DNA of 64,000 nt from Geosiphon pyriformis uo1 (GCA_016748015.1 JAAOMT010000608.1:124001-188000); one strand, 5' to 3'. Positions 19,211 through 64,000 are shown, counted from the first letter of the stretch. Program-made: numbers and translations. The notes: generated by a model from the sequence alone, not told the origin.

Positions 19211-21906
19211 TTTAGATGCGATCTTTTTTACGTTATATCATATTTATATATAGCTCTCACTAAAAGAGATTAATTGAATGTAATAAAAGTTGATTTACAG
19301 ACTTAATATTAAATTGAAAATTGCCAATCTTCAACTTTAGCGAAGATTATCTATTAGTGAAATAGCTTTTCTATCTATTTTACACTTTAAAACAGAAATT
19401 TCAAACAGTTTGAGAATTTACCTTCGCAAGAAAACGACAAGCGGAAGTGCATTATATCTGCCATAAGTTAGAATAGGTTGAAATTTCTATTATGATAGAA
19501 GATCAATCTTACTTTTTTTCATTTGTAAAAAATTAGTGTTTCAGTTTATGAAGTAATATCTCATTTTTTGGAAAATTATTAAATATTTTAATAAAATTGC
19601 AACTTTTTGCGACTTTTGAAAAATCAAAAATGTCATCTTTACTTAAAAGATATCGCAGTAATTTTTATTAATTTTTTATTATAATTTTAAATTGGAAACA
19701 TTTCATCAATTTAGCATGCTTTATAGTAAAATAAACAGAAAATATTTTTTATTTATGATTGAATAAATATGAATTTCATAAAATTTTTTTACAATTATAT
19801 ATATATTATTGAATAAAATTATGAAAAGTTTTATTTAACAACAATTTAATAACAAAACATAATTTAATTTAATAATTATCTTTAAAAAAATCATTAATTT
19901 AAGTGTTTGATTTGACTATTGTGCTAAATAAAAGTATAAAACAATATAAAATATAAATTTTATGTTGAAACAACTTTTTCAAATAGGTTAAAAAATTATA
20001 AATCTATTTTATTATAAAATTGTGGTTTGAAATAAATATTATTAATTGTTTTTTGTTTATAACTTACTAATCCAATTTTTTAAACTTGAATTTCTTTAAT
20101 ATATATTTCAGAATAAAAAGTTTGCTTAAAAAAAGTGTTAAATTATATTAATTAAAAAAATTTCAAATTAATATTACTTATAAATAAAGTCATTTATCTA
20201 TTCATTATTTTTAACTGTAAGTTGGATCCCGCAAAACAAGATGAATTACTCTCAAATTGGCCTGTTTAATTCTCAGGCCTCAAAATTATTGAACACTTTT
20301 TAAAAGAATTGAAAAATCATACTCAAAAGACCAAGAATTATTTTGGTATTAGAAAAAAATTTTCGCCAATTGATTTTCTGGGTTGCAAAAATCAGAGCTG
20401 CTATATTGTGATTTGGTTTAAAATTCATTAAATCAGTAAATTAATAACCATCTTTAGATAAATACAATGGTAAAAAGTTGATGCAGAATCCAATTGGTCT
20501 GCTAAAAAAAGACAGGGGTATGCAAAACCTAATATACCTTCCGAAAAAGGGTTTTCATGACCACGCATCAATTACGTTGTAACCAACAAGGAGACAGTGG
20601 AAAAGATTTTATTCTTCAAATTCATTTTCGAGCTGTTTTTAAATCGGGGTATTCTGCAATTGCGTTTATGGTTAACCTATTTCCCAATGTGCTGCATCAG
20701 GTATGCATGGGATTTTAGGTAATTTGGTCTGTTACATTATTCCCTAAACCTAAACTTCCTTGTATCTCCCAATCAGATTTTTGTGCGCATCCACATTCAG
20801 CTAATTTGCCCTAGATTGATCTTTCCATCAAAATGCAATATTTGTCGTTATTCGAACTTGGTAAACTTTTATTGAACCTTTACGGAATGATAAATTTTCC
20901 CAACAAAAATCTTAATAGGCTTGATTGATAATATATCTTTGTCTTTTGAAGAGGCAAGGAAAATACTCTCACCCTTTTAGAAATTGAAATGCTGACCCAA
21001 TATCTATTTCTCACCGATTTGAAGTGGTTAAAAGATTTGAATAAGAAACCTGATCACTCACATGAACGTATGAAAACATATCGAATTGAAACTCTCTCAT
21101 GGACAGAATCTTTTTTCAATTTTTCAGAGTTATATTGTCCAAATTTAGATTCACTCTTTTTAAATTCTCAACTTTTCATCAAGTTATAATTATCTGTTTA
21201 ATATGTGATTTTGAGATTCTAGTTGAAATAGACAATATTTACCAAATAAGACGGTTTTATTCAAACTCTAGGTAAAAGTCTGTTATCTTTAATGGGACAA
21301 AGCTTCGAACATTGTATATAGGTGTCACAAGTTTCAGCTCATTTACTGGAAAATTTTCAGTCTTGAAATTTTAATACCAAGATTACTTTAAAAGGGGTAA
21401 TAAAGTCCTCAATCTTAAGGGACGTGTTTGCATTCTATTATTCTGAATTAAAAAACAATTTCGCGATAAAAATTCCCAATATTGGAAGCGCAAGTGCACA
21501 ATTGGGCAGGAAACAGGGGTGCGTCGGCGGACGCCAAATTTAGGATTAGCATGACTTATGATATCTGTGGATGAGTCATGCATTGCTTATAAATGCATCA
21601 ATGTTGCCCCTGTGCACATGGTGCGCAATTGTTTGCACTCTTTTCTATTCCACAAACGCCTCGATATTGTCTTAAAAACTAAAAATTTTATTTTAAAACA
21701 CACCCACAAGGAAAGAACTTCAATATTTTTCCTGGAATCAGAGAGCCACGACAACTCACTAGTTCCCTGACTTCACCTTTTCTTTATAGGACACCTTTAA
21801 GTAGATATAATATTAAGAGTTTCATAAATTTATTATTCGATCATCTAATTTTGATCGCTTCTTATAACACACATAAGTTTTAACTTGTTGGTGCACATTG
21901 CACAAT

Positions 21907-24254
21907 ATGGAAATCGATCATAGTGAAGCCAGCAATAATCAGATGGTTTCTTCTACATGGCCAGCTGCAATTGATCAAGAAACTGGAGAAACTTCCTCTA
22001 ATCCATCACTGCAATCTCAACCATTGCAACAATTAGAAACATCCACAGTTATTCCAACCACGACTTCTCCCACCGCAACGGAGACTATCATTGCTGGTGA
22101 AACGCAAAGAAGAGCACGAAGATTGACGAAAGAAAGTCTTCGATTCAATCCGATCTGGAAAAAGAGATATCCTTGGGTAGTGCACGAAACAGCTGAAAGT
22201 AAAGAACGAATTTTTTGCAGCTGGTGTCGTGCTGCTAATTGTAATAACAAATTTGCAACGGATGGCTGTGAATGGATCAAGGAAGATTCACTTGTGAGGC
22301 ATCAAAAGGTTAAAGAACATGTGAACATCGTTAAAGGTCGAACCATTATCCCTGATAACCTATTACCTGTTCGCTTCACACAATACTATGATGTGGGAAA
22401 GGCCAAAGTTATTGAAAATATGAGAATCGCTTATTTCATGATTAAACAGAATATGCCATTGAATGGATATCAAGATTTTTGTAATTTTGTGACCTTTCAA
22501 TTTCAAAATCAAACTGGAATTACGCTTGAGGCACCACCAACCTCTCTTTCTCCGCTCATTCTCAAGCAAAATGCTAATAGATCTAGTTCGGCCTCTGTTT
22601 CAGGTTCCTCAACAAACGCGGTTGTTGGTATTCCCACTGCGACAACGCCTTTTCAAATTTCAATTAATGAAGCAGCATATGTAAATCCGGTTTCAATAAC
22701 AGAAATTATAAAAGCAATGTCTCGACTTACAGAAGATGCCGTTTTGACAGAATTGTCTGAATCTTCATGTTGGAGTTTAATTCTTGATCACACTACATTC
22801 AAAAATGGAGCAAAGTCAATTGCTGTTTATTCGAAACATTTATCGAGTGACTATTCTCCCGGTATTCGCTTCCTAGGTACGTTAAGAGTTCCGATCACTG
22901 ATCCTTCGACTGCTTCAAATTTGGTTCAAGTATTTTGTACTTCAAAACGCGTTCCACTTTCAAAACTTGTCCATATTGGCAGCGATGGTGTTATTGCCAA
23001 CTTAGGTATCTACTTTAGGTTTTTTTTCAAGTCTTAGATCATATCTCAGAGAAATTAGTCTTAACTAAAAATCTTTCAAATTACTCATAATTATTAGATA
23101 AACTAAATGAAGTTGAATCTCATATTAAAGCGAAACAGCCTTTCCTTATATCAATTCATTCACTAGGACAAAGTCTTCATTTGGCCATGAAAGACGCAGC
23201 GGATCAAATTCCGTACTTTGCCGAATATCAATTAATCATGAATGAAACACTTGATTATCTAGCTAGCGTTCCTGATGCCCCTTTGAATCTAAAATCAATC
23301 TTCGACTACAATTTTGGGAACCCAGAATCTCGTTTCTTATCTTGGTGTCAAGCAATTTCAGTTAATATTCAATTATTGGATGAAATAAGAGTTGCCCTGT
23401 CTTTAAGTCAAACAAAAAGTGCTAATATGCTTTACGAAAAGATTGGTCAAGACTTCACTTTAGCCAGTAAACTTTTGAACGATGTCTATCTCATACTCGA
23501 AGATCTCGGCTTGTTTTTCAAAGGTGATCCTATTTCAATTGCTAATCTTCAACCTCTAGTTACCCAAACGGTTCTCAAATTAAGGACAGCTTTTATTGGC
23601 ACAAAGGAAACTCGGGCGACTTATGGAACCTTGTTACGTCATTTTATGGAACAGTTAAACCTAAATTCGAGTGAAACTCTGCCAAGATTTATTGCTGAAT
23701 ACGCGTCGGCCACAATTACGGCTATTCAAAATAGATTTCCAGGACTAGAAATCTACCATGCAATGCGAATATTTGATCCATATTTTTTACCGAATGAACG
23801 TCGGGCAATGAATTTATATGGCAAGGAGGAAATAGAAATGTTGAATAGAATTTTCGGCAATCCAATTCTCCAAAATGGAATCAGATTTCCGTCAATTGTC
23901 GACTCTCAGGCATTGACCAAAGAATGGGCTCAGGCAAAGTATTTGCTGGCCGGTTATCGAGAGTTAGCATTTGCCGATGCTTGGAAAAAAACTTTTGAGA
24001 CATCAGATTTTAGGCAAGAGTTTCCAAATGTGACTAAAGTCGTAAGTATAGCATTGACAGTTCCATTCTCCACTACTACCGTTGAAAACCTTCTAATGCA
24101 ACAGAAAAGAGTTATTTCACAACATTTTGGCACTATGGATCCCGAATTACTTCAATCTTATATGATGATAACATTGAATGGTCCTGGTTATGACAAATTT
24201 GATTATGAAAAAGCTTATGATCTTTGGGCCCGTTCAGGCTTTCGGGTGAATTAA
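21907..24254 (+). CDS. hAT-transposase-derived protein (ZNF862/C17orf113-like zinc finger plus hAT C-terminal dimerisation domain), probably domesticated
   Basis: RFNPIWKKRYPWV...IFCSWC...LVRHQKVKEH zinc finger; WSLILDHTT; IGSDG; intron 23006-23097 joins in frame (751 aa); C-terminal FPNVTKVVSIALTVPFSTTTVE...LLQSYMMITLNGP. Confidence 0.85.
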
Positions 24255-28824: not shown

Positions 28825-30577
28825 ATGTCATTCATTTACGATATTAATTACTTCGATTTGGCTCTTTGTTTAATAACCATTTATGTTTTCCATTACTATT
28901 ACAATTATTTCACAAGAGAAAATCCACTCCCTGGTCCCCTTCCACTTCCAATAATTGGTAATCTTCATCAAATGGGGGATCCTGGAAAACTCGGCAAGAA
29001 ATTATACGCAAAATATGGTGACATTTTTGAAGTCTATATGGGCTCGGAACGACAAATATGGGTCTCAAAAAAAGACATAGTTGACAAGATCCTTGCTCCT
29101 TCGGCAAAAACTAACTTTTTTAATAAGGTATTTAAAATGAGTTTAAACCCTTCCTAAACCATTAATTGTTAATGAGAAAAATGTTCTATTAGGGAGCTTA
29201 CTCGGATGGTTTGAATGAAATTGGTGTACATTCGAATGGTATATTATTCAATCGAAACATTAATAGTTGGAGATTCAATAGAAAGTTTGCTGTTCAGGCC
29301 TTGACATCGATCCCATATCTCAAGGAAATCCACGAAACTTCTCAACAGCAATTTACCCAAGTGACAAACTATTGGGAGAAAATTGGTTCAAAAACACCCA
29401 TCAATATTGTCGAATGGCTTGAATGTTTTACTGCAGAAATTGTTATAAAAAACACAGCCAATCATGTAGTACATTTATTGGAAGCTTATTATACTAAACA
29501 CTTTCCAAATTTCAGTCAAAACACTCTTGAGATTTCTTTAGTGAAGGAATCTCAGAAATTAGTTGATCTTTTGTGTGCAATCCTGGGAATTGTTACATAT
29601 CTGATGGTTTTTCCTCATTGGGTACGACATTACATTCCTGGCTTCAAACAATACAATGATCACTGTTTAAAAACGAAGGCTGATTTGGATGAAAGAATCC
29701 TAAAATTGATCGCAAAACGAAGAGCTGAAATTGCCAAATTAAATCCAGATCAAGATAGAGGCCTTGATCTGCTTTCAGTCTTGGCAACAACGAATACAAC
29801 TCTTGATACCAATCAGATTTCAAAGAGTGAATTTGAACGAACTTTGACGGATGACGAAATACGAGCAATCATGATTGAAATGTTTGTTGGTGCAACAGAT
29901 TCAGTAAGATCATTAAGATTTCCCAATTAAAACTTATTTTCGTTGAAGACGAATAGACCAATAATAAAATTTTACTGACCTGAACTGTTTTTTAGACCGC
30001 TTTTTCGATTTGCTATATAATTTATTACCTCAACAAATATCCTCATGTCCTTGAAAAACTTCGTCACGAAATTTTTACAATCCTTGATAAAGACCCTGAT
30101 TCACCAATACCTTACGAAAAACTTGAAAAATTCGTTTACTGTGAAGCAGTTATTTTTGAGGTGAATCGTCTGATTACTGTTGTTCCTGTCATCCCCAAAC
30201 AATCTAACGAGGCAGATGAAATTGGTGGATACAATTGGAAAGCTGGAACTGTATTTTATATGAATCTTCAAATTATCAACGAGAACCCTTTATTATTCCC
30301 GGATCCAACAAAATTCGACCCCGAAAGGTATTTGATCAACAATGAAGAAGTTCCTGGTGAATTTAAGATCGATCAGAAAAAAGTTAACATGTTTAGTCAT
30401 GGGGTACATGTTTGTCCAGGTAGGCATATGGCGATGGTATTGATGAAATCCTTTATTGTAGCACTTTATAGGAAATACAATGCAAGACTAGTCGATGAGA
30501 ATGCTCCTTTAGATATATATTGTGATCTTTTGAATAAGTGTAAACCGTTTAATGTTTTTATCTCACCTAGAGTTTAA
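28825..30577 (+). CDS. Cytochrome P450, membrane-anchored
   Basis: N-terminal TM plus PGPLPLPIIGNLHQ; I-helix FVGATDS|T; EVNR; FDPERY; heme motif FSHGVHVCPG; introns 29128-29192 and 29904-29995. Confidence 0.95.
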
Positions 30578-32735: not shown

Positions 32736-33194
32736 ATGAATATTGACCTAAACTCCTTTTCCCAAGTTTTTTACCCTCTAAAGAGTTCAGTAGTTGAAGA
32801 TGAAGACCTTATTACCCGTCTTCGGACATGGCTTCATGATAATAAAACAACCTTCCAAAGTGTTCGTGAAAGATTAAAACTCGATAGTGAATCGAGTCAT
32901 TTGAAAGAATATGCATGCATTTTAGGCTTTTTTTATCGTCATGGTTTGGGGATGAACGAACCGAACCTGGAAAAAGCTTTCAAATATTACCGAATTGCCG
33001 CCGAAAATGACAACCCTTTTGGGCAAAGACAATGGGCTCAGGTTCGAATTGCTGATTTGTATTTTCAAGGAATCGGGACTAGGGAAGACATTCATAAAAG
33101 TCTTCAATGGTACAGGAAAGCTATGGAAAATCACTCAATCGATGTTTATCACGAAATATCAGCAATTTTCACTTCACATTGGTATAGGGTTTAA
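32736..33194 (+). CDS. Short Sel1-like repeat protein
   Basis: ILGFFYRHGLGMNEPNLEKAFKYYRIAAEND and AQVRIADLYFQGIGTREDIHKSLQWYRKA. Confidence 0.85.
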   Translation: MNIDLNSFSQVFYPLKSSVVEDEDLITRLRTWLHDNKTTFQSVRERLKLDSESSHLKEYACILGFFYRHGLGMNEPNLEKAFKYYRIAAENDNPFGQRQWAQVRIADLYFQGIGTREDIHKSLQWYRKAMENHSIDVYHEISAIFTSHWYRV

Positions 33195-35017
33195 CACAGT
33201 ATATTAGATTTTTATTTATTAAAAAACTAAGGATTATAGAAGAAAGATTCAAATATTCATTTTGAAATAGAATTTGCCATCTCAACAAAAAACTTTAGCC
33301 ATTTTCAGGAAAAAGAAAGACTGCCTCAGATATAATTTTACAGGGGATTATCAAGCTCAAGTTTATTTCAAAGGAAACCATTTACAGACGGCAAATTTAC
33401 CCTTTGGTGGGGGTTGAATTATGCTTAGAATTATTCACTTATTGGTGCAAATCTAAGAATCAAATTTTTCTATCAAAAATCAGACATTTCAGATTTCCAA
33501 TTGATTCTTTCACATGTGAAAGACTTAATTTAAGGATTAATAAGTACTGATTAAATTTTTATTTAAGATCGTGGGTGCATTCATTGTTGAGATCAAGCTT
33601 TACCCAAAATGTAATACAAACCTTTAATAAATTCTTGTCATAGGTTTAATAAGATAAAATTTATTACGAACTCGAGAGATTCAGTTTTGTTAAAAAAATA
33701 AGTTGATAATCAAGTAAATAAATAAATACACCTTATTAATTTCATTTAAAGTTGTTCTTTCTATTATATATTAGCCATTAAAGTTATAATTAAAAATGGA
33801 TGCTCAGATCGTGGTAATTTATGTAGTATTTATTTAACAAATAATTATATGTATAAATATAATCAATTAACTTGTATAATAGTTATTTATCTTTACATTT
33901 TCATTTTTAGTTCTAATTATGTGATAAATAAATATCATATAATTTAAATAATTAGTTTAATATTTATTTTCAAAATCAATTATTGATTTAATTATTGACC
34001 TAATCATTAATTTTTTGACCAAATTGTATGAAAAAATACTTTAAACTTATAAAAAAAATATCTTTTTTATTTTCTATTTTGTTGTACTTAATAATAAAAA
34101 GCTAATGAAATTCGAAAATTTACATAGATAATATTGATATCAAAATTTTAAACTTATCTTAATTAAATAAGATTTACAAACTATTTTTAAATTTCTAAAT
34201 CTTTTTGTTAAAAAATAATATCTCAAAAGATATTTTTTTATTAAACAACTTATAATATTTAAATTGTAATAATAAGTTAAAATATTTAATATATTGTAAC
34301 AAAAATTATTATTATTTTATTAAGTAATTCTTAATATAGGGTGTTATCTTTAAAAGTTTAATTAATTTTCAAAGCAGATTTTAGAATTCATTTATTATAG
34401 TAAAAAAAATGTTTACAATGTTTAATATTATATTTTTTATGAGTTTTTACAAAAACAGTTTTAAGTCTATTTTTAGTTATTATATTTATTAAAAAGTTAT
34501 TTTATTTGATAAGTATTAAAAAAAATCTAATTCATATTTTTTGAGTTTCAATATTTTTTTGCATCAATGAATTTAAATTATAAGTTATATGTAAGTAAAA
34601 ATAATAATAAAAATGAAAATAACTTAAAAAGATAGTTTCAAACATTAATCAATATTTTTCACAATATAAAAATATAAAGCTAAAATTAAATTTTTGTGCC
34701 AAATTCAAATACATATTTTAAAACTGGTTTTATAAATATAATTTAAAGAAAATTGACAATATATAGCAATTAAGCATTATAATCATAATTATAATTAATT
34801 TAGAATTTATTATTTTAAAATTAAATATTAAACATTTAATTACAAATAATTAATTAATATAAATTTTTTAAATAATTTCCTTCATAAATAATGATTGTTC
34901 TTTAACCTATTTTTATATGCAAAAAATAATATTAGATTATTGTCTTTATTTAAAGTATATTTTTTTGAATAAAGTTTTTGTTATAAAATTATGTGATTGG
35001 GCCACACTCGGGATTGC

Positions 35018-35018
<1 letters not shown>

Positions 35019-35053
<35 letters not shown>
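35019..35053. repeat. (TAA)n microsatellite
   Basis: Direct reading. Confidence 0.9.
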
Positions 35054-35056
<3 letters not shown>

Positions 35057-35875
35057 TTATAACATATGTTTTTAAATGAAAAATATTGTTTTTTACAAAA
35101 ATTATAAGAAATAAATTATTTATATATTTTGTATTTTTGTATTATTAAATAACCAATTTTTAATAAAAATAATATTAATTATAATTTAAATTTAATAAAC
35201 AAATTTTTCATTTGATAATTTAAAAAAAAAATTTTTTTCAACAGTTTTATATATACTAATATTTACTAAGAAATAATTGATTTAATTAATAAAACAATAA
35301 TGATTTTTTATCATAAAAATTTGCAAACATGTTGGAAAGAAACAACGCTTTTAAAAGAATAACGATTCAAAGCATGTAAAAAATTACGTATGAAATTTTA
35401 TGTCAATAAAATCTGTTGCTTTGTATATATCATATAATTCTATAATTAATCTTGCAAAATTAGTTTTTGTAGATAGCATGAAAAATTATGATGAAATAGA
35501 ATGTAAAAGAAAAAAACTAATTCGAAGGAAGAAGGGTGGGAAAAGAAAGTAGCAATAAAATTGGTAAAGATATCTTGGCAGAAGAGTGATAAATTTTTTC
35601 GATAAATTAGAGGTCGCATGGGTAATTTCTTAGATAATCGATATTGGGTAGGAATTTATAACTTTGAATTAAGTTAACGAGTAAACAATAAAATATCAAA
35701 CTTAGAATAATATTCTTTAGGTGTGAGAGAATACCTTTTAAAAAGCTAACTATTTTAACATATTGAAATGAATATAATAAACTTGATAATTTATGTTTTA
35801 TAATGTGATAAAGGTTATCTGGAATTCTTCCGTTATGAAAATTAAAATGACAAGTACCGATCACGATTAGATCTA

Positions 35876-37135
35876 TTAAGAGTTATCTAAATATAATAGA
35901 TAGCATAAATAATGTAGTGTTAAAGAAGAGCATAAACTTTATTAATGATTAATGATAGATGTAATATCTTACCTTCAGGCAAATAGACTAATTCTTTTAA
36001 AAGTAAAGTAATTTGATGTAAATTTGTAATACACTGTATATTAAATTAATGAATCAATATAAAATAGATAAACTAACCTTCAGAAAAATTAACCATCTGT
36101 GCAGTTAAAAGACGACTTGTATAAACTGCTCCTGGATGAATGCGCGTTGGCGTTGTCGAGGATTTTGTTATTTCGTCGTGTTTCTTAGTTTTTTTCAGAT
36201 ATTGAATATATTTTGAAAATCTTCCTAAAGGTTTTGTTGTCATCACGCATTTATCTGATTCTAAAAATTGTAAAATTAACATTTCTGCACCGCATTTAGC
36301 TGATTCTACAAACTGTAGAATTTCATCTTTAGACTTCTCATTTTTGAACCGCCTGTACATCTCCATAAGGCTCCACAACTTATCCGCAACTTTATAGGCA
36401 GTAGGACGATTCTTAGGATTAACATCCCAACACTTTTTCATTATTTTAGCAATTGAAGGTGGGATAAGTGGGGAGGTAATCGTAGGTCTAGCCCCATTTA
36501 AAATAGCCATTATAAGAATTTGATCATGTTCACAATCATGAAAGGGAGGCTTTCCTGTTGCTAATTCCCATAATAGCATGGCAAAACTATAAATATCACC
36601 AGCCGAAGTAAACTTTTCTCCTCTTAAAACTTCTGGTGGAATGTACGGAATCGATCCATATATCTTTTTTTCCGATGCCACTGTTGTTACTTCATTGTTT
36701 ACTGGTTGACATAATCCGAGGTCCCCAATTTGTGTGTTAGCGAAACTAGATTCATATTGTAGGATGTTGCCCGAGTGTAGGTCACGATGAACCATACCAG
36801 AAGAATGAATTGAAAAAAGTCCTTGGGCTATAGAATGCGCGATCCCTAATTTATCAGACCAACTCGTAGAATGAAAATTTGTTGATAAATATTTTCGCAT
36901 GTCTCCATGTTCAGCAAACTCCATCACAATTCCATACTCGAGTGTTTCAGCGTTTTGCGTAATCCCAAATATTGAAGAGATATAATCTAAGTCTTTACCG
37001 TTTTTATTGATAAACATAGCTCTTTGAATATTTAACTATAAACACAGTGTAAAAAGTAAATAATTAATATAAATAATTAAACAATAATATACAGTAAATA
37101 AATAAATAAATAATAGTAAATATGAATTTTATATA

Positions 37136-37172
<37 letters not shown>

Positions 37173-37635
37173 TAATTACCTCTTTAAACACTTCTGAACT
37201 GCTCGTTTTTATAATTTTTATTGCTACTTGCATCCCTTTGCTATGTTCCCATCTTTTATATTCCATTTCACCATGATGTTTTATAGTTGCTACATCAATT
37301 AATCCATCAATTAGGGTTGCTTTATAAATTATACCGAATCCTCCTTTAGCAATTTTATTGATATTCGACAAACGGTCCCATGGAATCCAAGAATAGTAAT
37401 TCAATCTAGCATATTCATTATAATACTTAATAGGTGGAAGATAGATTGGATTCTTAATGATTTCATCAACTACTTTATTGCCGCTTGAAAAGTTGTGATA
37501 AAGTTTTTCAAAAAATAGGAACCAGCATGTAGCGCAGTGATTCGGTTTATTTTTTAGAATACTCTCTTGACAAAGTTTACATTCGTTGCAATTATGAACT
37601 TCTGGACGAGTTCTTTTAACTTCTTTATTTTCCAT
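35876..37635 (-). CDS. Tyrosine-kinase-like protein kinase (type expanded in Glomeromycotina)
   Basis: Cys-rich N-terminus, SSGNKVVDEII, WIPWDRL, AKGGFGIIYKA, VAIK, HRDLHSGNIL, GDLG, GSIPYIPPE, DIYSFAMLLWE, IHPGAVYTSRLL; intron 37036-37179 and two short 3' exons ending at TAA 35878-35876. Confidence 0.95.
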
Positions 37636-40600
37636 GATTAACTTTATGTAAATAAAAATAAAATTGAATAGGCTATTTTTCGAATAGGTTTTTTAAAAAG
37701 AACAAGGTTTTGTTTAGAAACTAATTTTTTAAAGGTAGTTAGTATTTATGTTATTTCCCTGTGTTCACATTAATTTATTCATCAAACTATGATTCGCTAC
37801 AAATCATACTGTCTCATTTGTAGAACCACAACAAAAGTAATACCGATTAAAACTATTTAGATTTTGTGTCATGCATGAAAAAATATCATACTGCTGAAAT
37901 TCTTTATCGTGTTTCTAAATTTCAAAAAAGACCAACAGATTAATGTTATTTTTGTTTACCTTTGATCTTCTATTTATTCTCTCCGCCACCCTTTTATTTA
38001 TCCACCGTTATATTACCATTCTGCCGAAACTTATTCATCTATTCACTAAAAACTTTAAGAAGAAGTACTTCCAATAAGTGCATGTCCATCGCCATTATAA
38101 CTAGGACTGTAATATATATTTGTTATAATTAAGGCAATTATGAATTATAAAAAAAAATATAAATTTGAAGAAATATATTTTAATTTAATATTCTTTTTAA
38201 TTAAGCTTTATTTCAATTACTAACAAATAGTTTATTTTAATAACATAAAAAAAACCACTTTTTATTAATCAATAACCAATCTTTATTATAAATTTAAATT
38301 TAAATATTACTTTAATATCGCTTGAAATTGTATTATAATATTATTTTATATATATAATGAATTTTTTCAATTTTTGATGGATTAAAATGATTTGAACGTT
38401 AATCAAAAATTAATGTGAATTTTCTTAACTGAAAATCACAAAAAACAACAAGTTTTATGATATTATGCAAAAAATTAAATATATTCATTATTTAGGAAAA
38501 AAATTTATAATAATTTACTATATAAAAATTATTTGCCATTTTTAATAAAATTAGTGAGATAAAATAATTAAAATATTAATATTAATTTTTCCAAAAAAAA
38601 AAGTTTTAAATAACAAATAGCAATAAAATTATAAAATCGTTTTTTTAAGAAAATTCAAATTAGAATATATTTAAAATTTAATATTTGTTTATCTTTCATT
38701 ACCTTTTTTCATTAATTAAACTTGAATTAAAATAATTTCGCTGAATTTTTACAAGGTAAAAAGAAATATATAATATATTGAATGATAGCTATTAAACCTT
38801 TATATCATTTTCAAAAATAATCTATTAAGTATAAATTAGAAAAAATAATTCAATTAATTAATTACTTGTCATGGACTATAATCGAAGGGAAATTAGTTTT
38901 AAATAATTACACATATTCAAAGTTTAGCATATTAATTAAATCAAAAATTATTCAATATGCTTTGAAGTTAATTACTAGAATTAAATATAATTAGTTTATA
39001 TGCTATTTGAAATTCTGAAAACTAAATATATAATAAATATTTCCATGTTTTGATAAACTCTATTACAATCTCATAATTATGTGTTTTATAATCATTTTTA
39101 TTAAAGAAATATATAATAAATTTCCAAATTAGCTTTTGAGAAATTATTTTTGAACAAGAAAAAACCAATAAAATAAAAATATAATAAATAAAACATTTGA
39201 AATCGAATGAATATTCTCATTATTTATTTCATGAATCTTATTACAAAATCTTTTATATTTTAACTTCAAACGATATATAGTATCTGAGTTGCTTTTATGA
39301 TAAATTTAAATTGGAGAATTTTATCAAGATCTTTTATTCTACACTTTGACTTTAGTTATTCTTTTAGTAGGGGAAAACCTTCTATTACTTAAAACTCTAA
39401 CACAAAATGGTAATTATAAACCCTTAAAAGGATTTCACAATGAGGTGAACAATTTTAATTTTTAAAAAAGTATTGATCACTGAAATAAATACAAAGAATA
39501 ACCATTTTTATTTGCAAAAATGTCTTTTTTTTTATACATAACAGAACTTAGAAAATCTGAAATTTTTTATCATATACTTTTTTTATATAATAAAACACAC
39601 TTTAAAAAAGTTAAAATAAATAATTTTTTAATATTTCAAGTAATTTTTTTAGTGTTATAACTAGTTGTATTATATTAAAACTTTTGAAAAAAAATTTGAA
39701 CAAATATATTTAGATTGTACTTATTAAAAAAACTTTGATTATTTATTGTTGTCAATTCAATTAAATTGAAAACAATTTATAAAACACAAAACATTTATTA
39801 TATATTGTATACTAAGAAAACTTTTTTTTTAGGTTTAATTAAAGCAAATATTAAAAAAATATTCTTAATTTTTTTATAATAATTAAGAAAACAAAAACTT
39901 AAAAAGTTTTTTTAATTATAAAAGTGGGTTTTAAATCAGAAAATTAAAGATTTTTATAAAACATCTTTTTTGGCTAAAGTTAAACATACTTTATTCATTA
40001 TTTTCTTGATTATATGTTTAACAAAATATCTAATTATTATTTTTAAATTTAAAGAAGTTTTAAATACAGCTGTTGTCAAAACTGGAATTTTGAAAAAATG
40101 TTTTATTGGTAAAAACATAACGCTAATCTAATTTATTAAATCTGTGTTATATGTCCGAGTTTTTATTTATTTTAATATATTTTTATTGAAAAACTAAAAA
40201 AAAACCTTGTATTTTTAAAAACTCAAATTTAGAGTTTTGTTTTAAATCTTTTGTAATATTGTGGGTTCTTTAATACAAAATATGGATTCTTTGAAACAAA
40301 TGTGATTAAACCTAATAATGTTTCTTTGAAAAAACCTGTGTGAATATTGTTAATGATCTGTATATATTTTCTTAAAAAAATGATTGAATTATTTACTTCA
40401 AAGTTGGTACATGTTTGTGCTATATTGAATGTATTGGCTTGTACGCAGACTGAGTACCTTGTGAATTCTGATGAAGCTCCTGTTTATTGGTATGGTAAAA
40501 AAAAAAATTTATAATCTTTAAAGTTTAGTTGTCTCAAGTATTGATCAGTTGAGGTGGCTGGTCCTGTGTAAAAAGTGCATGAGCTGACTTTAATATGGAG

Positions 40601-40836
40601 CATGTAGATTTTGGATGTATTTAAATAGCAGTTGGATCACACCATGTTAAAGCAATTAAAATAAATAAATAAATAAATAGATCAAGTAATTTTTAATGAT
40701 CAACATATAAAACGATCACTTTCAGGCTTGGCAAAAATTTTATTAGTGTGCGAGAAATCACACAATTTCGAACTTTGCGAAATATCTCCAAGTAAAATAA
40801 GTGAATTTACATCTGAAAGATCATCAATCTGGAAAT

Positions 40837-42286
40837 ATGGAGAAAAATTATATTGACATAAATGAGAATTTCAAAAAAGATACGATTGATACACCAATTG
40901 TTATTGTTGACGATTTGACCTTTTCCTGGCCTTCGAAGACAGAACAAAAGCTCAAGTCGGTTCCTTTTTACGTTACTCAGGAAACAGTAATGCCCGTCGT
41001 TTTTATTGACGACTTGGCTTTTCAAAAGAGGAAAGAATATCAGAGACCACGAGTTATTTCATCTTTATATGAAAATTCCAGCATTTATGATATTGACTCA
41101 ATTTACAAAGGGAACCAACATTTTTCGAGCGATTCGAATTTTTCGCATGTGCAACAAAACGACAATTCAACCAATCCTTCGGATGAGGAAAATTCTGCAG
41201 CATCACCCGATCCAGAATCGGCTGATGATATACCGATTTTGTTTATCGATGATTTATCATACTTTCAACAAATAGATGCTAAGAAATCATCTTTTCATTC
41301 GAAAAGAAATCCACAAAACTATAACAGTGCATTCAGGTTCGCTGCAAAGAAATTAAGAGACATTAACCCAAAAGTGTTCTCAGCTAGAAAATTTAAACAC
41401 CCGAACCGACGAAATTATGAACTCGTAAATGAATTGGCATACTTCATCAATGAACGTCAAAGAATATTTTTAAAGAAATCTCGAGGGGAAAAGCCACCAT
41501 TCACAAATGACTTTGCTTTAGCAACTTATCGCTTTACGAATGTGAGTCAATTCTTTTATTCGTGCCTCATTTAAGCAATTCAAATTCTATAGTTTTATCA
41601 AAATCTAGGTTTTCCGTGAAGACGATCGAGCCTCGAGGATTATATTCAACCTACTTTCCAAAAACACCCTAGATGATCTAAACTACATTCCAAATCTCAT
41701 TCTTCACCGATTAGTCTCTAGACCAATTATTAATGAAAGCTTAGGTTATGTGACCAATATAAAAAAGGCATGGAAAGCTATGGAGAGGCGCCAAAAGAGA
41801 GGGCTCCCAATTAGCACTTCTGCTTTCCAATCCACCTTATCATGGAAAGAAAGATATGAACAATGGCTGAAAGTCTTTGAGAATGGAAATGATCTTTTTC
41901 AAGCCATAATTGAAAGGAATCCAAAGCCGACTCTTGCAGATGCGTATATAGTATTACTTGATGACAAACGTATACCACAAATCGGGACATTTACAGCATG
42001 GCAGATAGCTGCTGACATGTATATGATGAACTTAATCACTTATGGGGAAAATAAAGATTATGCTGTATTAGGTCCAGGGGCACGGCAAGGGCTCAAATTA
42101 TTTGGTAATATTTCTCTTAGTTGCCTTCTTAAAAAGGTGAATCAAAAGCTTGGTAATCACTTTCAAGGGCGGAAGCTTAAGGGGTTGGATTTAGAGCATA
42201 TGCTGTGTGAATTCCAAAAGTACAAGAAAGTAATAAATGGCGAGTTTTCTGGATTACGTTTGTTGGAAACTGTGGATCGAAAGTAA
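40837..42286 (+). CDS. aGPT-Pplase1 / 5-hmdU DNA kinase helical-domain homologue (phage thymine-hypermodification family, HhH-glycosylase-like fold), 460 aa
   Basis: FINERQRIFLKKSRGEKPPFTNDFALATYRFTN|VFREDDRASR (intron 41542-41608, GTGAGT...CTAG), IGTFTAWQIAADM, LGPGARQGL, DLEHMLCEFQKY. Confidence 0.85.
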
Positions 42287-46104: not shown

Positions 46105-47423
46105 CAGTCCTCCCGAAAAGTAATGGCGGGGTATTTTTTTTATTTTTATTTTTTTTATACATAATAATTTCTGTTTAAATTTTAATATTTAATAGATATA
46201 TAAGTAAATAATATATATGCAGAAAATTAATATTTAGTATGTCCTCCTTTTACACTAATACAATCTTGAATTCGATTTTGCATACTAGTAATACAGTTAA
46301 GAATGGCCTCATTAGACAGATTATTCCATTCTTCTTCTACTATTGTAATAAAAATCGCTTGAGAGATATTTTTTTGTGTGCTATTATTGCTTTGACTTTT
46401 TTCTCAACATTTCGTTTAAGAATAGCCCAAATATTCTCAATTGGATTGAGATCTGGACTATATGATGGCCAAGACAAAACGCGATTTGGCAGTTGCATCT
46501 CAAGATCTGCGCGAACATCTTTTGAAGTATGCTTTGGATCGTTATCATGCTGGAAAATTCAACGTTGTCGTCCATATATGCTAGTTGCATTGTAATATAA
46601 ATTCTCATTGAGAATTTTACGATAAAGATGTCGGTCCATATTTTCTGTAAAGATGCACATTCCAACTTTTCCATATGCACAAATTGCTCCCCACATATGA
46701 AGTTTAAATGGATGTTTTACCATTGGTGCAATAGGTTTACCCGAATGAGACCAAGCTAAGCAAAGTATTTCGAAACATTTGTAAAGTTGTTTCATCTGAA
46801 AATACTACTTTGTGCTAATTATAATTAGAATGTTCTTGAGCCCATACTAATCGGTTTTGTTTGACTTGTTCGGTGAGTAGAGGTACACGTCTTGGTAAAA
46901 CAGCTGTATAACCAAGCCTAGAAAGTTCATCGCGAATAGTCTGTTCACTTATTTCAATCTCAAAATATGTTTTTGCAAGTTGTGCCTTGATTTCAATTGC
47001 TGTAGTAAAGTGATTTCGATTTACGATTTTCCAATCTGGCGACGCATTTTTGGTAAAGTTTTTCGTGGACGACCTGCACGATGAATTGCTCGAATTTGAC
47101 CATTTTTACGAAGTTGTCCTATATATCGTTCACAAGAGCGAAGAGGAACATTTGTTTTTCGAGATATTTCGGTTGGACTTCGATAACCTTGTTGCCAAAA
47201 TCTCTTAACGACTTCACGATTGAATTTTACAGGATTATATTTCATTACAAGAAATAAAACGCGTTATTGATCAAAACAATTTTGTTTTAAAAAATAAAAA
47301 TAGTAGCATGGAATGTATGCGCGTACAAATTATTACTTAAAATGTCTTAACAATAGCTGATCGGACCATAATAAGAATTACGCGCCGCAAGAGTTACCCC
47401 GCCATTACTTTTCGGGGGTACTG
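46105..47423 (-). mobile_element. Tc1/mariner-IS630 superfamily DNA transposon, 1319 bp, full length with inactivated transposase
   Basis: 29-bp TIRs CAGT(C/A)C(T/C)CCCGAAAAGTAATGGCGGGGTA (27/29 match) at 46105-46133 and 47395-47423, flanked by TA at 46103-46104 and 47424-47425. Confidence 0.95.
46240..47245 (-). pseudogene. Tc1-like transposase pseudogene (DD35E)
   Basis: HTH N-terminus with GRPRK, VVFSDET, HMWGAI, FQHDNDPKHTS, WPSYSPDLNPIENIW; two Trp codons mutated to stops (TAG, TGA) and frameshifts. 3' end approximate. Confidence 0.9.
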
Positions 47424-59426: not shown

Positions 59427-61386
59427 ATGTTTTTTTTAATAATTATCGTTTTAATAACCACCATAGTTGCTTGTCTTACTCTTCTCATATCTGATCAAAA
59501 AAATAAAAGACCTTTATCAAATGGTGCATTAACTCTTCCTGGACCACCACCCCTGCCAATTATTGGAAATGTTCATCAGTTAAAACCGATGATACATAAA
59601 CAGTTTTCAGATTGGGCGAGGCGATATGGACCAATTTTTCAAGTACGAGTCGGCAATAAAGTTTGGGTCATTTTGAATGATCATGAGTCCATCAAAGATC
59701 TGTTTAAAACTCGTGGAATGATCTATTCGTCTAGATTTGTAAGTCGTTTTTTAACTTTACGAACATACTTTTTTTTTTGATATTCCAAACGGTCTTGATG
59801 ATTTTTTTTTAAAAATTATTTCTTTAGAAAAGTCACTTAATTAGCGATGTCTGGTCAAACAACTCAAAAAGTCTTGCTTTTGCTCCGGTACATTGAAAAT
59901 TTCAATGGAGGGTTTTCTTTTTCTAGATCTCATAATAAATTTTTCTTCAATTTACATGGTAACTGTATTTTGGAAAAAGTACGGCAATTGGTGGAACACG
60001 ATGCATTCAGTTTTTGTACTATTAAGTCGCGAAGAAAATATTGATAATTTATATCAACCAATTATCAATCATGAAGCCAGGCAATTTCTTCGAGGAATAT
60101 ATCAACAAGCTAAAAATAAGATTGCGATCGATCCAAGTGATGAAATTGAGATTTTATTGTTCAAAATCATGTTAACCATTGTCTATGGCAAAACTAGTGG
60201 CCTAGATTCTTTAAAAACACAATATCAGCGAATAGTAAATGATGTTTATGACAGTTTGACCACAGCAAATCTTCCCGATATTTTTCCGTGGTTACGATAC
60301 CTTCCGATGATGACAAGGCTTGAAAAAAAAATTTCAAAGCTTCATTGCGATAGGGTTAATCTCGATGTGAAACTTTTGAGAGAAGTCAAATCCCGTATGC
60401 AAAAAAATGGTGATATCAGCGAAACCTGTGTAGCTTCACAAATCCTAAAAAATGTGAAAATCGATCCATATTTGACGACTTCACCCTACAGTCATATATT
60501 CACAAAGGATAAGGATGGCAAGTACACTTTTGATGAATACGATGTATACAGTTTGTGCGCGAATTTTATTATTGGTGGAACTCAGTCTACGCTGCAATCC
60601 CTACGCTGGTTTTTTGCAATTTTGGCCACCTATCCTGACGTTCAACAAAGAGTTCAGGACGAATTAGATAAAGTAGTTGGCAGGGGTAAACTTTTCACTC
60701 TCAAACATGAACCTCATCTACATTATTTAAAAGCGACAATAAAGGAAGCATTCCGTTACAGGTACTGAAAAAATATATTCTTCTTTCTCTTTTCGTTTAT
60801 TTCGTTTTCTGAATTTTAATTGTCTAGTTTCTCACCTATAATAGACCAACTAACTTAATGGGTTGTGCACCACATCAAGTTGATCGAGATGATACTTATC
60901 GTGGTTATCATATCCCCGCTAAAAGCGTAATAGTTAGTAATTCTTATCCAATAATAACCAGTCCCTTGCTTTTCGAAAACCCATCAAAATTCAAACCGGA
61001 ACGATATCTTGACCGTGATGGTCACCTAAAACCTTTCGATGAAATTCGTGAATCTTGGGTATGTAAATGTCTATTAAATTTTATAATCATATTGGGATTT
61101 TAAAACTAAAAAATTATATTTAAAAACATTATTCAAGATATTTGGAAGGGGCAGACGCTCCTGTCCTGGAATTGATCTAGCAAACAAAAATATACTTACG
61201 CCACTTGGATATACCCTTGCTCTATTTAATTTTGAAGTACCAAAAAATCCTATTACTGGGAAAAATAAATCTATCGATTTCGAAAAAGGATTTCAAAACA
61301 GTTTTGATTATAGGGTGGAAAAGTATGATTTAATCTTCAGACCTCGAAGAGGTATTGATATCGAGGCCATTTTACAAGATCGATGA
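59427..61386 (+). CDS. Cytochrome P450, membrane-anchored
   Basis: TM anchor, PGPPPLPIIGNVHQL, I-helix IGGTQST, KEAFR, FKPERY, IFGRGRRSCPG; four GT-AG introns; stop TGA 61384-61386. Confidence 0.95.
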
Positions 61387-64000
61387 TAGTTTAACTTTTT
61401 CATTAAATAACTTAATTGGTATATACTTTAATTAGATTTTCGTAAAAATTTTTGTTTACAAACAATTACAGTTAAAATTAATTTCAAAAACAGGATATTT
61501 AGCCACTGTCACTTTAACCTGCAATTAATTTCCAATATTAAATGAAAATTCTAGCGACCGTAAAGTTAATAAAGGACTGGCATCAAATTTTTAATACTTA
61601 AAGAGTGCTGTAGTTTAATTTTTTGGATGTTATATTTTATCAAAGAAAAGGAGATTGTTATCAAACCTCGTTCAGTGAGAAATAAAAAGTTCTGTCTTAA
61701 ATTTGAAATGAATTGTTATTTTTTAATCAAAATGAAATATTTTTAAATATATTTAATAATTAATTAAGTTAAAAAATAGATTTCCCAATAATTAAAATAA
61801 ATAATCGAAATAAATAAATAAAAATTTGAATTAAAAAATAAATATACATGTAAATTTTAATCCGAAGTTGAATGTGCTTCGGATTAATTGTGAAGCACGT
61901 GATAAAAAGTACAACAAATAAAAATGGGTATAATGTAAGAAACTCTCATCTTTTAGTTTTTATTTAAACAAAAAAACACATAACTAAAGTAAAAAGATAT
62001 TAATTAGTGTAATTAAGCTTGATAAAATTAATAATAAATATAACTATTAAAGATATTTAAAATTATTTAAATCAAGAAATTTATTTATTTATCTCTTTTT
62101 AAAATTATTTACTTTTAAAACTAAGAATTTTTTGTAAGCATAGCATCTAAACCAACATTTTCAACCTCTTTAGAATCTTTTATACTATAAAATATTTTGA
62201 TCTAATAATATGTTTTCAACTGGTAAAGTAAAACAATTTTAAAGCTATGTCTATGTAAATAAAGATTCATTAATTGAAAATTAATTAAAAATATATTTAA
62301 AAATGTACAGAATAAGCATTTTATAGGTTATCATTAATTACATTTAGATTATTTGGAACTAAAACTATGTAATAATTAAAAATTATATTTTTAAAATATT
62401 ATCTTTTATTGAAATAAAGTATGAGTGTTTTATTTACAATAGCTTTATTAAAAGTATTTAATATATAATATTAATAAAAAATGTAAATGTAATACATTTT
62501 TATTCAAAACAATAAAAATTTTTTGAAAATTTGTTTTTCAATGTTAAAATTTAATAATTAATATAAAAAAAAACTTAATTACATTATGTATTATTATTTT
62601 AAATTGTTTATAGTATTTTAAAAAAATATCTTTTATGATTATAATTTAATTGTTATTTATTATTTCTGTTAATTTCATTTTGAAAAGTATTTAAATATTT
62701 TTCAATAGCAATTGAGATCAAACTTAATTAATACTTAAATATAAATAAAATTTAAATTAAATTTTAAAACTTATTATAAATAGTATTTTGTATATAAAAC
62801 TGTTAAAATTAACTCTGTATTAATAAATAATAAGAAAATAGATTACACCTTTTATTTTTTATATAAAAACAAATAATTGTAAATGTCACAATATTTAAAA
62901 AATAAAATAAAATAAAATAAAATTTTTAACTATTTGTGTTAATAAATATTATATTTTTTATAATATTTATTTTAATACAATTTATTGTTACAATAACTAA
63001 TTTCAAATATTGACATAACTCTTTTTTTGGTTAATAATTTTTACATTTTTTTTATTGCTTTGAAAGTGTATAGTAATGTGCTTTCTACAAGTGACTAGTA
63101 ATCCATTTACATTTTTTATTATATTTCAAATTAATTTGTATTTTTCAAAATTATTTATTTAATTAAAACTTTTCAACATTTAAAAAACCACTAAACTATT
63201 ACGAAATCAATTTTCTCAATTAAATTTGCTATTGATTATTTTTTTATTTTTTCTATTTTTTTTATTGGAGTGTAATTTATAGCATTGTTCATTTAACAAT
63301 TATAAATATGGCATAATTATTAAACAAATAAAACAAAAAAAACCTATTTAAAAAATTAAACTTTAACTTTAAATGATTAATTTAAAAATAATAAAACATG
63401 AAAATTTGGTATCATTTGCATAAAAAACGAAATTAAGGTAAAATGGATATGTTTATAACTTGTTAAAAAAATTGAAATAGTTTTGTTTCGTATTTTTAAA
63501 TAGTTGTTTGAAAATAAAGTAATATAAAATTGTTTTTGTAATAAGTTGTAAGTTTAAAATAATTATATACCGAGTAACAGTTTTTAATTGCTGTTTTAAT
63601 TTACAACTCAATTTAAATGTTTATTTTTATGTTTCTAATATTTGAACATGCATTAATATTAAATTGTGAAATATAAAGTTTTGAACACATTAGATTATTA
63701 TTATTATTATTTTAATTATAAACTTGCTTTAATTTTAAATTTATGGTTGCTATCTTTCTATTATGTCCATTTTTTTTATAAAATACAATCACTAATTTTT
63801 GTATTTATTTTGCTTGTTTTATATTAAAAAATTTCTAATTGTTAAAAATAAAAAAAATAAAAATTTTGTCCTTGAAAATTTTTTATATTTATTCTATATT
63901 TGTTTTTTATGATATTTTTCAAAATAGGATTTAGTTTTAAAACTGTATTTGGAAATATTATTTAATTTAAAATAAGTATTTAGATTGAGATATTAAGTAG

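Follow-up and report, generated by a model that had tools for sequence, protein, structure and literature searches.

A 64,000-nucleotide (nt) window from the genome of the symbiotic fungus Geosiphon pyriformis uo1 (GCA_016748015.1, JAAOMT010000608.1:124001-188000) contains, on the plus strand at positions 40837 to 42286, an intact, single-copy nuclear gene coding for a protein with a PF18723 domain behind a disordered N-terminal region. That the protein truly belongs to PF18723, as a conserved fungal member, is secure; the family (HMUDK_hel, '5-hmdU DNA kinase, helical domain', formerly aGPT-Pplase clade 1) is referred to here as clade 1, and 5-hmdU stands for 5-hydroxymethyldeoxyuridine. To our knowledge, demonstrated thymine hypermodification is limited to phages. 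The Geosiphon gene belongs to a conserved, intron-bearing fungal clade that has the full catalytic signature, no recognizable kinase partner and, in some members, fusions to chromatin readers, which suggests early fungal recruitment for use on nuclear DNA. The reading that we favor, and to which we give about an even chance, is that the protein is a chromatin-directed, cysteine-dependent and kinase-independent enzyme whose target in DNA is a 5-substituted pyrimidine.

Two plus-strand open frames in different phases span the gene, and removal of a 67-nt intron joins them into a single frame of 460 amino acids (aa). Exon 1 (40837 to 41541) has 235 codons, with residues 1 to 195 forming a low-complexity N-terminal region and residues 196 to 235 the first helix of the PF18723 domain; the plus-strand spliceosomal intron (41542 to 41608; GTGAGT...TAG) is in phase 0 between the Asn and Val of FTN/VFRE, and exon 2 (41609 to 42286; 225 codons and a stop) codes for the bulk of the domain. 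The two exons were searched separately and unjoined, with the spliced product represented by the public record P0002. Residues 196 to 235 of exon 1 match PF18723 profile positions 3 to 42 (31.2 bits) and residues 1 to 213 of exon 2 match positions 43 to 279 (70.9 bits), against a Pfam cut-off of 25 bits; the result for this gene is identical in a six-frame search of the genome, and PHROG 2396 gives a similar pattern of matches across both exons. Because the profile runs gap-free across the proposed splice, which is not expected by chance, the intron is strongly supported. P0002 (G. pyriformis 'hypothetical protein G9A89_002329', 504 aa) uses the same intron, and its residues 45 to 504 are 100% identical to exons 1 and 2, with YRFTN/VFREDDR at the splice junction; the orthologue from Ambispora leptoticha, P0001, reads straight through the junction region (FRFTNVFREDDK). 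The profile continuity, the P0002 identity and the Ambispora read-through all bear out the original prediction, made from the DNA alone, of an intact gene spliced at a 67-nt intron. The public gene model also has a 44-residue N-terminal extension, in which an additional upstream exon (40380 to 40494, plus strand; 38 hydrophobic residues and one base of a split codon) is spliced to position 40820, and residues 1 to 39 of P0002 correspond to an open reading frame (ORF) at 40347 to 40514. This exon resembles a signal peptide and has no counterpart in Ambispora or any other orthologue; its reality is doubtful, and it may be a prediction artefact.

Membership of PF18723 is indicated by the profile scores, by an all-alpha, helix-hairpin-helix glycosylase-like predicted fold and by the invariant residues, and the homology to the aGPT-Pplase1/HMUDK helical domain proposed from the sequence is thus upheld. 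With residues numbered from P0002:225-504 (adding 180 gives the numbering of the 460-aa protein), seven columns of the 105-sequence family alignment A1 are invariant, namely R58, D61, F183, D191, G212, C255 and E256, all of which are kept in the Geosiphon protein and in every fungal member. R58 and D61 are the Arg and Asp of REDD (41615 to 41626), and the invariant Phe and Asp of GTFTAWQIAAD (41984 to 42016) align with the base-stacking Trp146 and with Asp153 of PaMx11 gp46/PUGT, a clade 2 enzyme described below. GPGARQGL (42071 to 42094) corresponds to a hairpin of the helix-hairpin-helix type, through which the protein presumably touches the DNA backbone, as judged from the conservation of the block and the glycosylase-like fold. 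The alignment places the Glu, His and Cys of EHMLCE (42194 to 42211) opposite PUGT Glu243, Thr244 and Cys247, and all four of these motifs are on the plus strand. The Cys and the Glu that follows it are a pair present in 105/105 sequences, and the Glu aligned with PUGT Glu243 is present in 88/105, with Gln in 16. GTFTAWQIAAD, GPGARQGL and DLEHMLCEFQKY, the motifs listed at the outset, are all present as conserved blocks of this alignment.

The phage clade 1 proteins (PaMx11 gp50, M6 gp55, ViI gp160 and the C-terminal half of SP10 gp186; PF18723, PHROG 2396) are in the same family and have the same invariants, and over the whole domain the fungal protein shares about 24 to 29% identity with those of cultured phages and 38% with the metagenomic phage protein P0004. 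A tblastn search finds 71 cultured-phage records at 23 to 29% identity, including SP10-type Bacillus phages and M6/YuA/PaMx11-type Pseudomonas phages, both of which are known thymidine hypermodifiers. P0004 is the closest nonfungal relative and is coded by a 99-kb phage contig (ENA ERZ27247789). Part of this contig (L008:1-16780) carries a primase, P0004 and a small P-loop kinase in a row, with a ThyA-like gene, PolA, DnaB, RuvC, Vsr and RecA nearby, and is likely from an uncultured thymidine-hypermodifying phage.

An exhaustive profile-free search returns 2,174 relatives at E ≤ 1e-3 and four at E ≤ 1e-30. A word search with exon 2 finds P0001 (311 aa, 58% identity), and P0001 as the query finds P0002; this word-index protein search, which has a length window and limited sensitivity, returns one protein with exon 2 and three with P0001. 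Among the best matches are proteins of Basidiobolus ranarum and of the chytrids Spizellomyces, Gaertneriomyces, Powellomyces, Thoreauomyces, Rhizophlyctis, Borealophlyctis (two proteins) and Quaeritorhiza, and UniRef already names the Basidiobolus and Spizellomyces proteins by their Pfam family. Two further proteins, P0006 and P0007, are ∼900 aa long with the domain at the C terminus, after ∼600 conserved residues of unknown fold; the P0006 gene (L011:2557-5283) is on a eukaryotic metagenomic contig, and P0007 has a sub-threshold SET hint only (13.4 bits). The word search, which covers annotated proteins and is weaker evidence than a genome search, found no orthologue in Glomerales or Diversisporales.

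A 149-row tree unites 13 proteins from fungi or other eukaryotes with four of phage type in a clade that has a Shimodaira-Hasegawa-like approximate likelihood ratio test (SH-aLRT) support of 99, and support is 94 in a reduced, quick-mode tree that was paired with an approximately unbiased (AU) test. Monophyly of the 13 eukaryotic rows is not rejected by that test (log-likelihood difference, 0.74; p-AU, 0.49). The trees thus place phage proteins as the nearest relatives of the early-diverging fungal clade of Archaeosporales, Basidiobolus and chytrids. A separate, second eukaryotic clade consists of the pelagophyte Chrysophaeum taylorii protein (P0094) and a cluster of short metagenomic contigs (P0016), with a PF18723 domain followed by a PHD finger. 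The clade of Archaeosporales, Basidiobolus and the seven chytrid genera lies apart from this algal PHD clade.

Several lines of evidence suggest that the gene has resided in fungi for a long time. The phase-0 intron between the Asn and the Val or Ile of FTN/VFRE is common to Geosiphon (67 nt), Ambispora (88 nt) and Basidiobolus (71 nt) when the proteins are mapped to DNA. The Spizellomyces intron is 5 nt downstream of the FTN/V position, the Gaertneriomyces orthologue is intronless, and the introns of Rhizophlyctis and Powellomyces lie elsewhere in the gene; because these chytrid orthologues lack an intron at that position, the shared-intron argument is confined to Geosiphon, Ambispora and Basidiobolus. 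All of the fetched fungal orthologues sit among housekeeping eukaryotic genes, including those for Med31, gamma-tubulin complex proteins, TAF4, an RNA polymerase subunit, Prp19-like WD40 proteins, PUS7 and Myb/Cef1, and no gene neighbors are seen to be conserved across these fungal loci. For exon 2, the proportion of nonsynonymous differences between Geosiphon and Ambispora (pN) is 0.30 and that of synonymous differences (pS) is 0.84, these being given instead of dN/dS because synonymous sites are saturated. Replacement sites are thus held back, and at the level of these two orthologous sequences the comparison points to purifying selection. The description of the gene as intact and domesticated therefore stands, given its single copy in the 128-Mb assembly (six-frame genome search), the ordinary fungal neighborhoods of its orthologues, an intron position common to two fungal phyla and a pN far below pS.

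These observations bear directly on whether the gene might be a nonfunctional remnant of horizontal transfer, might come from a contaminant or might be an artefact of annotation. Phages and bacteria hold the great majority of the family (by the 2,174 relatives and 71 phage records noted above) and Geosiphon hosts bacteria, both of which would make such an origin plausible, but the contig is one of typical AT-rich fungal genes, the spliceosomal intron is held in common with two other fungi, the frame is intact with all invariants kept, and pN is far below pS. This explanation is already largely refuted, and we regard it as extremely improbable; the eukaryotic neighbors, the shared intron and the pN and pS values exclude a contaminant, a pseudogene and a relic of recent origin. 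A multicopy gene carried by a transposon is likewise rejected, the gene being single copy.

An AlphaFold2 model made with the A1 alignment is all helical, with 12 helices (predicted local distance difference test score, 94.3; predicted template modelling score, 0.90). In an exhaustive structural comparison, the top match is PaMx11 gp46/PUGT (PDB 8z2m; Z 10.0, root mean square deviation 3.9 Å over 207 residues), a crystallized amino-acid:DNA transferase which belongs to clade 2 of the aGPT-Pplase-type proteins (PF18724, ADDT), together with M6 gp51 and ViI gp247; PUGT structures are PDB 8Z2M and, in complex with DNA, 8Z2N. The structural check proposed at the outset thus finds an aGPT-Pplase-type fold in the spliced product, although this required an exhaustive aligner beyond Foldseek, which gives no match in the PDB at E ≤ 0.001 and shows the same themes weakly in its AlkA, MutY and EndoIII rows. 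Because PDB sequence searches with exon 2 or the family profile returned no match, the link to PUGT came at the search stage from fold comparison alone. The Geosiphon protein has no match to the PF18724 profile at E ≤ 1 and is not filed as a member of that family by sequence. An hhalign comparison with the lone PUGT sequence is too weak (probability 1%), and profile-profile alignment of A1 with a clade 2 profile of 10 sequences (PUGT and nine further clade 2 proteins from phage records) gives a partial alignment of 115 columns with an E value of 4.8e-5 and a probability of 68%.

This profile-profile alignment pairs fungal G181 with PUGT G144, F183 with W146, Q187 with K150, D191 with D153, E251 with E243, H252 with T244 and C255 with C247. 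The fungal GxFxxxQxxxD corresponds to GPWxxFKxxD of PUGT and the fungal ExxLC to ETILC, with identical spacing, and the matching motifs and spacing suggest the same layout of base clamp, metal ligands and Cys nucleophile as in clade 2. In PUGT, the flipped thymine is held between Trp146 and Cys247, the metal ligands are Glu243 and Thr244, Cys247 is the proposed C6 nucleophile, and alanine mutants, including those at W146, K150, E243 and C247, have been probed (PMC11472151); in M6 gp51 and ViI gp247, replacing the conserved Cys or a nearby Glu with Ala abolished activity (PMC8989533). The presence in the fungal protein of an ADDT-like catalytic Cys four residues after a Glu, together with an aromatic base clamp, suggests that it works like clade 2 without being a member. 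There are also differences: identity with clade 2 is 8 to 11%, the fungal protein has the GPGA hairpin where PUGT has FKDP, the amino acid or amine donor pocket is not recognizably conserved, and the phospho-activated substrate of clade 2 requires a kinase, which is not found in Geosiphon.

Below PUGT in the structural ranking are helix-hairpin-helix glycosylases (Ogg, AGOG, AlkA, Mag1, NTHL1 and EndoIII; Z 6.5 to 8.3 over 160 to 215 residues), a range that the aligner's own note calls only suggestive for helical proteins. The HhH-GPD glycosylases (Ogg/AGOG, AlkA/Mag1, EndoIII/NTHL1 and MutY) and QNG1/DUF2419 resemble the fungal model in having an all-alpha, two-lobe fold with a hairpin, which in the fungal protein is the GPG hairpin, and this comparison is one of folds; neither group has a sequence-level match to the fungal protein, and where the glycosylases have Asp and Lys, the fungal protein has Cys as its conserved nucleophile. 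An eraser or repair enzyme, either glycosylase-like or removing the C5 side chain, that clears oxidized or foreign hypermodified pyrimidines would fit both this fold and the mobile-element-borne TET/JBP copies described below, which would yield oxidized bases in need of processing. However, the best structural and profile match is a transferase, PUGT, and not a glycosylase, no counterpart of the HhH-GPD catalytic Asp/Lys is identified in the fold-level comparison, and the conserved nucleophile is Cys, as in enzymes of C5 chemistry; we consider an eraser rather unlikely. The third and fourth places in the ranking go to the QNG1 structures 7u07 (Z 8.3) and 7ugk (Z 7.9), which raise the alternative of a free nucleotide or RNA substrate, after the queuosine-salvage role of QNG1, and the DNA-pathway partners PF18748 and PF18724 are indeed not found in the genome. 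PUGT nevertheless ranks above QNG1 and its DNA-contact and active-site residues align with the fungal protein, the GPG hairpin is conserved, and relatives with chromodomain or PHD modules point to chromatin, so that a nucleotide or RNA substrate seems quite improbable, and a DNA-directed enzyme is preferred.

Chromatin modules are found in some relatives. The orthologue from Gaertneriomyces sp. JEL0708 (P0009; L016:3001-4191) has a C-terminal chromodomain (PF00385, 44.7 bits), the Chrysophaeum protein has a C-terminal PHD finger (30.2 bits), and the Powellomyces (P0090) and Thoreauomyces (P0098) proteins have Cys-rich, PHD-like C termini without a Pfam match. The low-complexity N-terminal region of the Geosiphon protein contains three copies of P-[IV]-[IVL]-[IF]-[IV]-D-D-L-[TAS]-[FY], PIVIVDDLTF (40894 to 40923), PVVFIDDLAF (40993 to 41022) and PILFIDDLSY (41233 to 41262), all on the plus strand; Ambispora has at most one weak copy.

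The genomic context of clade 1 differs between phages and Geosiphon. Phage clade 1 genes are beside or fused with a 5-hmdU DNA kinase, with a dUMP hydroxymethylase-type ThyA and often a clade 2 transferase near; PaMx11 gp50 (141 bits to PF18723) begins at the end of the kinase gene gp49, some metagenomic proteins, such as P0065, have a thymidylate kinase-like domain fused to PF18723, and SP10-type proteins are likewise kinase fused. The fungal gene is instead solitary, is interrupted by an intron and codes for 195 additional N-terminal residues, and neither the kinase nor the transferase is detectable in its genome; the association with kinase, dUMP hydroxymethylase or clade 2 transferase, which is a matter of pathway context and not a feature of the domain, is not seen in Geosiphon. 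The PF18748 kinase, the PF18724 transferase and the kinase half of a fusion protein have no match in the 128-Mb genome, in a search made exon-wise in six frames on a draft assembly, which limits how far absence can be read; the lack of a visible kinase in the window, remarked on earlier, thus extends to the whole genome for PF18748 and PF18724. The genome does have at least ten exon-level matches to TET/JBP dioxygenases (PF12851), the best at 33.7 bits against a cut-off of 34.9. The TET/JBP-like loci (L003 to L007, on C727, C692, C551 and C657) are multicopy, with the FHRD (HxD) iron motif and in some cases in-frame stops, and this family looks transposon borne. The proposed search for partners has thus turned up TET/JBP-like sequences, below the cut-off and partly decayed, but not the P-loop kinase PF18748.

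How the protein might act can be proposed by analogy with PUGT. It would bind DNA through the GPG hairpin, flip a 5-substituted pyrimidine into its pocket and attack C6 with the invariant Cys, enabling chemistry at the C5 substituent in which a group is transferred or removed. The likeliest substrate would be 5-hydroxymethyluracil or 5-hydroxymethylcytosine made by the TET/JBP dioxygenases of the genome, and action would be on chromatin and without the phage kinase. Targeting in chytrids may be through the fused chromodomain or PHD-like modules, and in Geosiphon perhaps through the three N-terminal repeats as SUMO-interaction motif (SIM)-like or PxVxL-like motifs.

Several points weigh against a catalytic role of this kind. 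Clade 1 in phages is tied to the 5-hmdU DNA kinase, either adjacent (PaMx11, P0004) or fused (SP10 type), and this linkage could mean a helper role and not catalysis. M6 gp55 can be omitted from the in vitro M6 reconstitution, and that study assigns no activity to gp55 or ViI gp160; in the literature on these pathways there is no clade 1 protein with demonstrated activity, and what ViI gp160 does is not settled there. As the kinase is not found in Geosiphon, the phage-type activated phospho-intermediate may not exist in this fungus, and the TET/JBP matches inspected fall below the Pfam cut-off exon by exon, with some decayed. The residue equivalence with PUGT draws on the profile alignment of 68% probability and on the fold rank, and the three N-terminal repeats are putative counterparts of a SUMO-interaction motif or an HP1-binding PxVxL motif.

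Some of these points favor a noncatalytic reader or adaptor, in which the helical domain would recognize and flip a modified pyrimidine, in the way of a DNA-binding helper to the phage kinase, and recruit chromatin factors in fungi. The Pfam name is now that of the 'helical domain' of a 5-hmdU DNA kinase, phages have the domain closely linked to the kinase or fused with it, clade 1 is dispensable in the in vitro M6 pathway, and some relatives are fused to reader modules while Geosiphon carries the peptide motifs. Against this, the strictness of the Cys-Glu pair (105/105) and of the Glu aligned with PUGT Glu243 (88/105) is unexpected of a pure binder, and we hold a reader to be a possible but doubtful alternative to the Cys-dependent enzyme. 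A broader extension of the enzyme reading, that early-diverging fungi (Archaeosporales, Basidiobolus, Spizellomycetales and Rhizophlyctidales) have a novel, chromatin-targeted hypermodified pyrimidine made or removed by a kinase-independent clade 1 enzyme acting on TET/JBP-oxidized bases, is put forward only tentatively, as unlikely on present grounds; if it held, the modified base would be an epigenetic mark new to eukaryotes, with its origin in a pathway by which phages counter restriction.

Eukaryotic homologues have been predicted before, as the original prediction noted for fungi. Iyer et al. in 2013 reportedly described them in basidiomycetes and in chlorophyte and stramenopile algae. 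The idea of these earlier predictions is the same, with phage thymine-hypermodification domains recruited and some joined to chromatin modules, and the PHD fusion is confirmed here in Chrysophaeum. Among fungi, basidiomycete homologues are mentioned by name by Lee et al. in 2018 (PMC5889632). The searchable literature yields nothing relevant on fungal clade 1 work, and four features appear to be unreported in it: an early-diverging fungal clade with a phage sister group, an intron shared across phyla, a full catalytic signature retained without a kinase, and a chromodomain fusion. Spizellomyces punctatus, which carries an orthologue (SPPG_03006), is a transformable chytrid and could offer an experimental route to the function of clade 1 and to any new fungal DNA base.

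The neighbors of the gene on the Geosiphon contig are ordinary AT-rich fungal genes and transposon relics, and no plausible functional partner is among them. They include a TKL-type protein kinase (36073 to 37635, minus strand), a Sel1-repeat ORF (32736 to 33194) and two cytochrome P450 fragments (29211 to 29930 and 59893 to 60768). TKL kinases, Sel1-repeat proteins and P450s are typical expanded families in Glomeromycotina. Two adjoining ORFs at 21898 to 24254 code for a C17orf113-type zinc finger and a hAT dimerization domain, which indicates a hAT transposase relic, and minus-strand ORFs at 46559 to 47245 resemble a helix-turn-helix and a DDE remnant of a Tc1/mariner-type transposase. Extremely AT-rich blocks (GC 14 to 17%) flank the gene islands at 34001 to 36000, 38001 to 40000 and 62001 to 64000.

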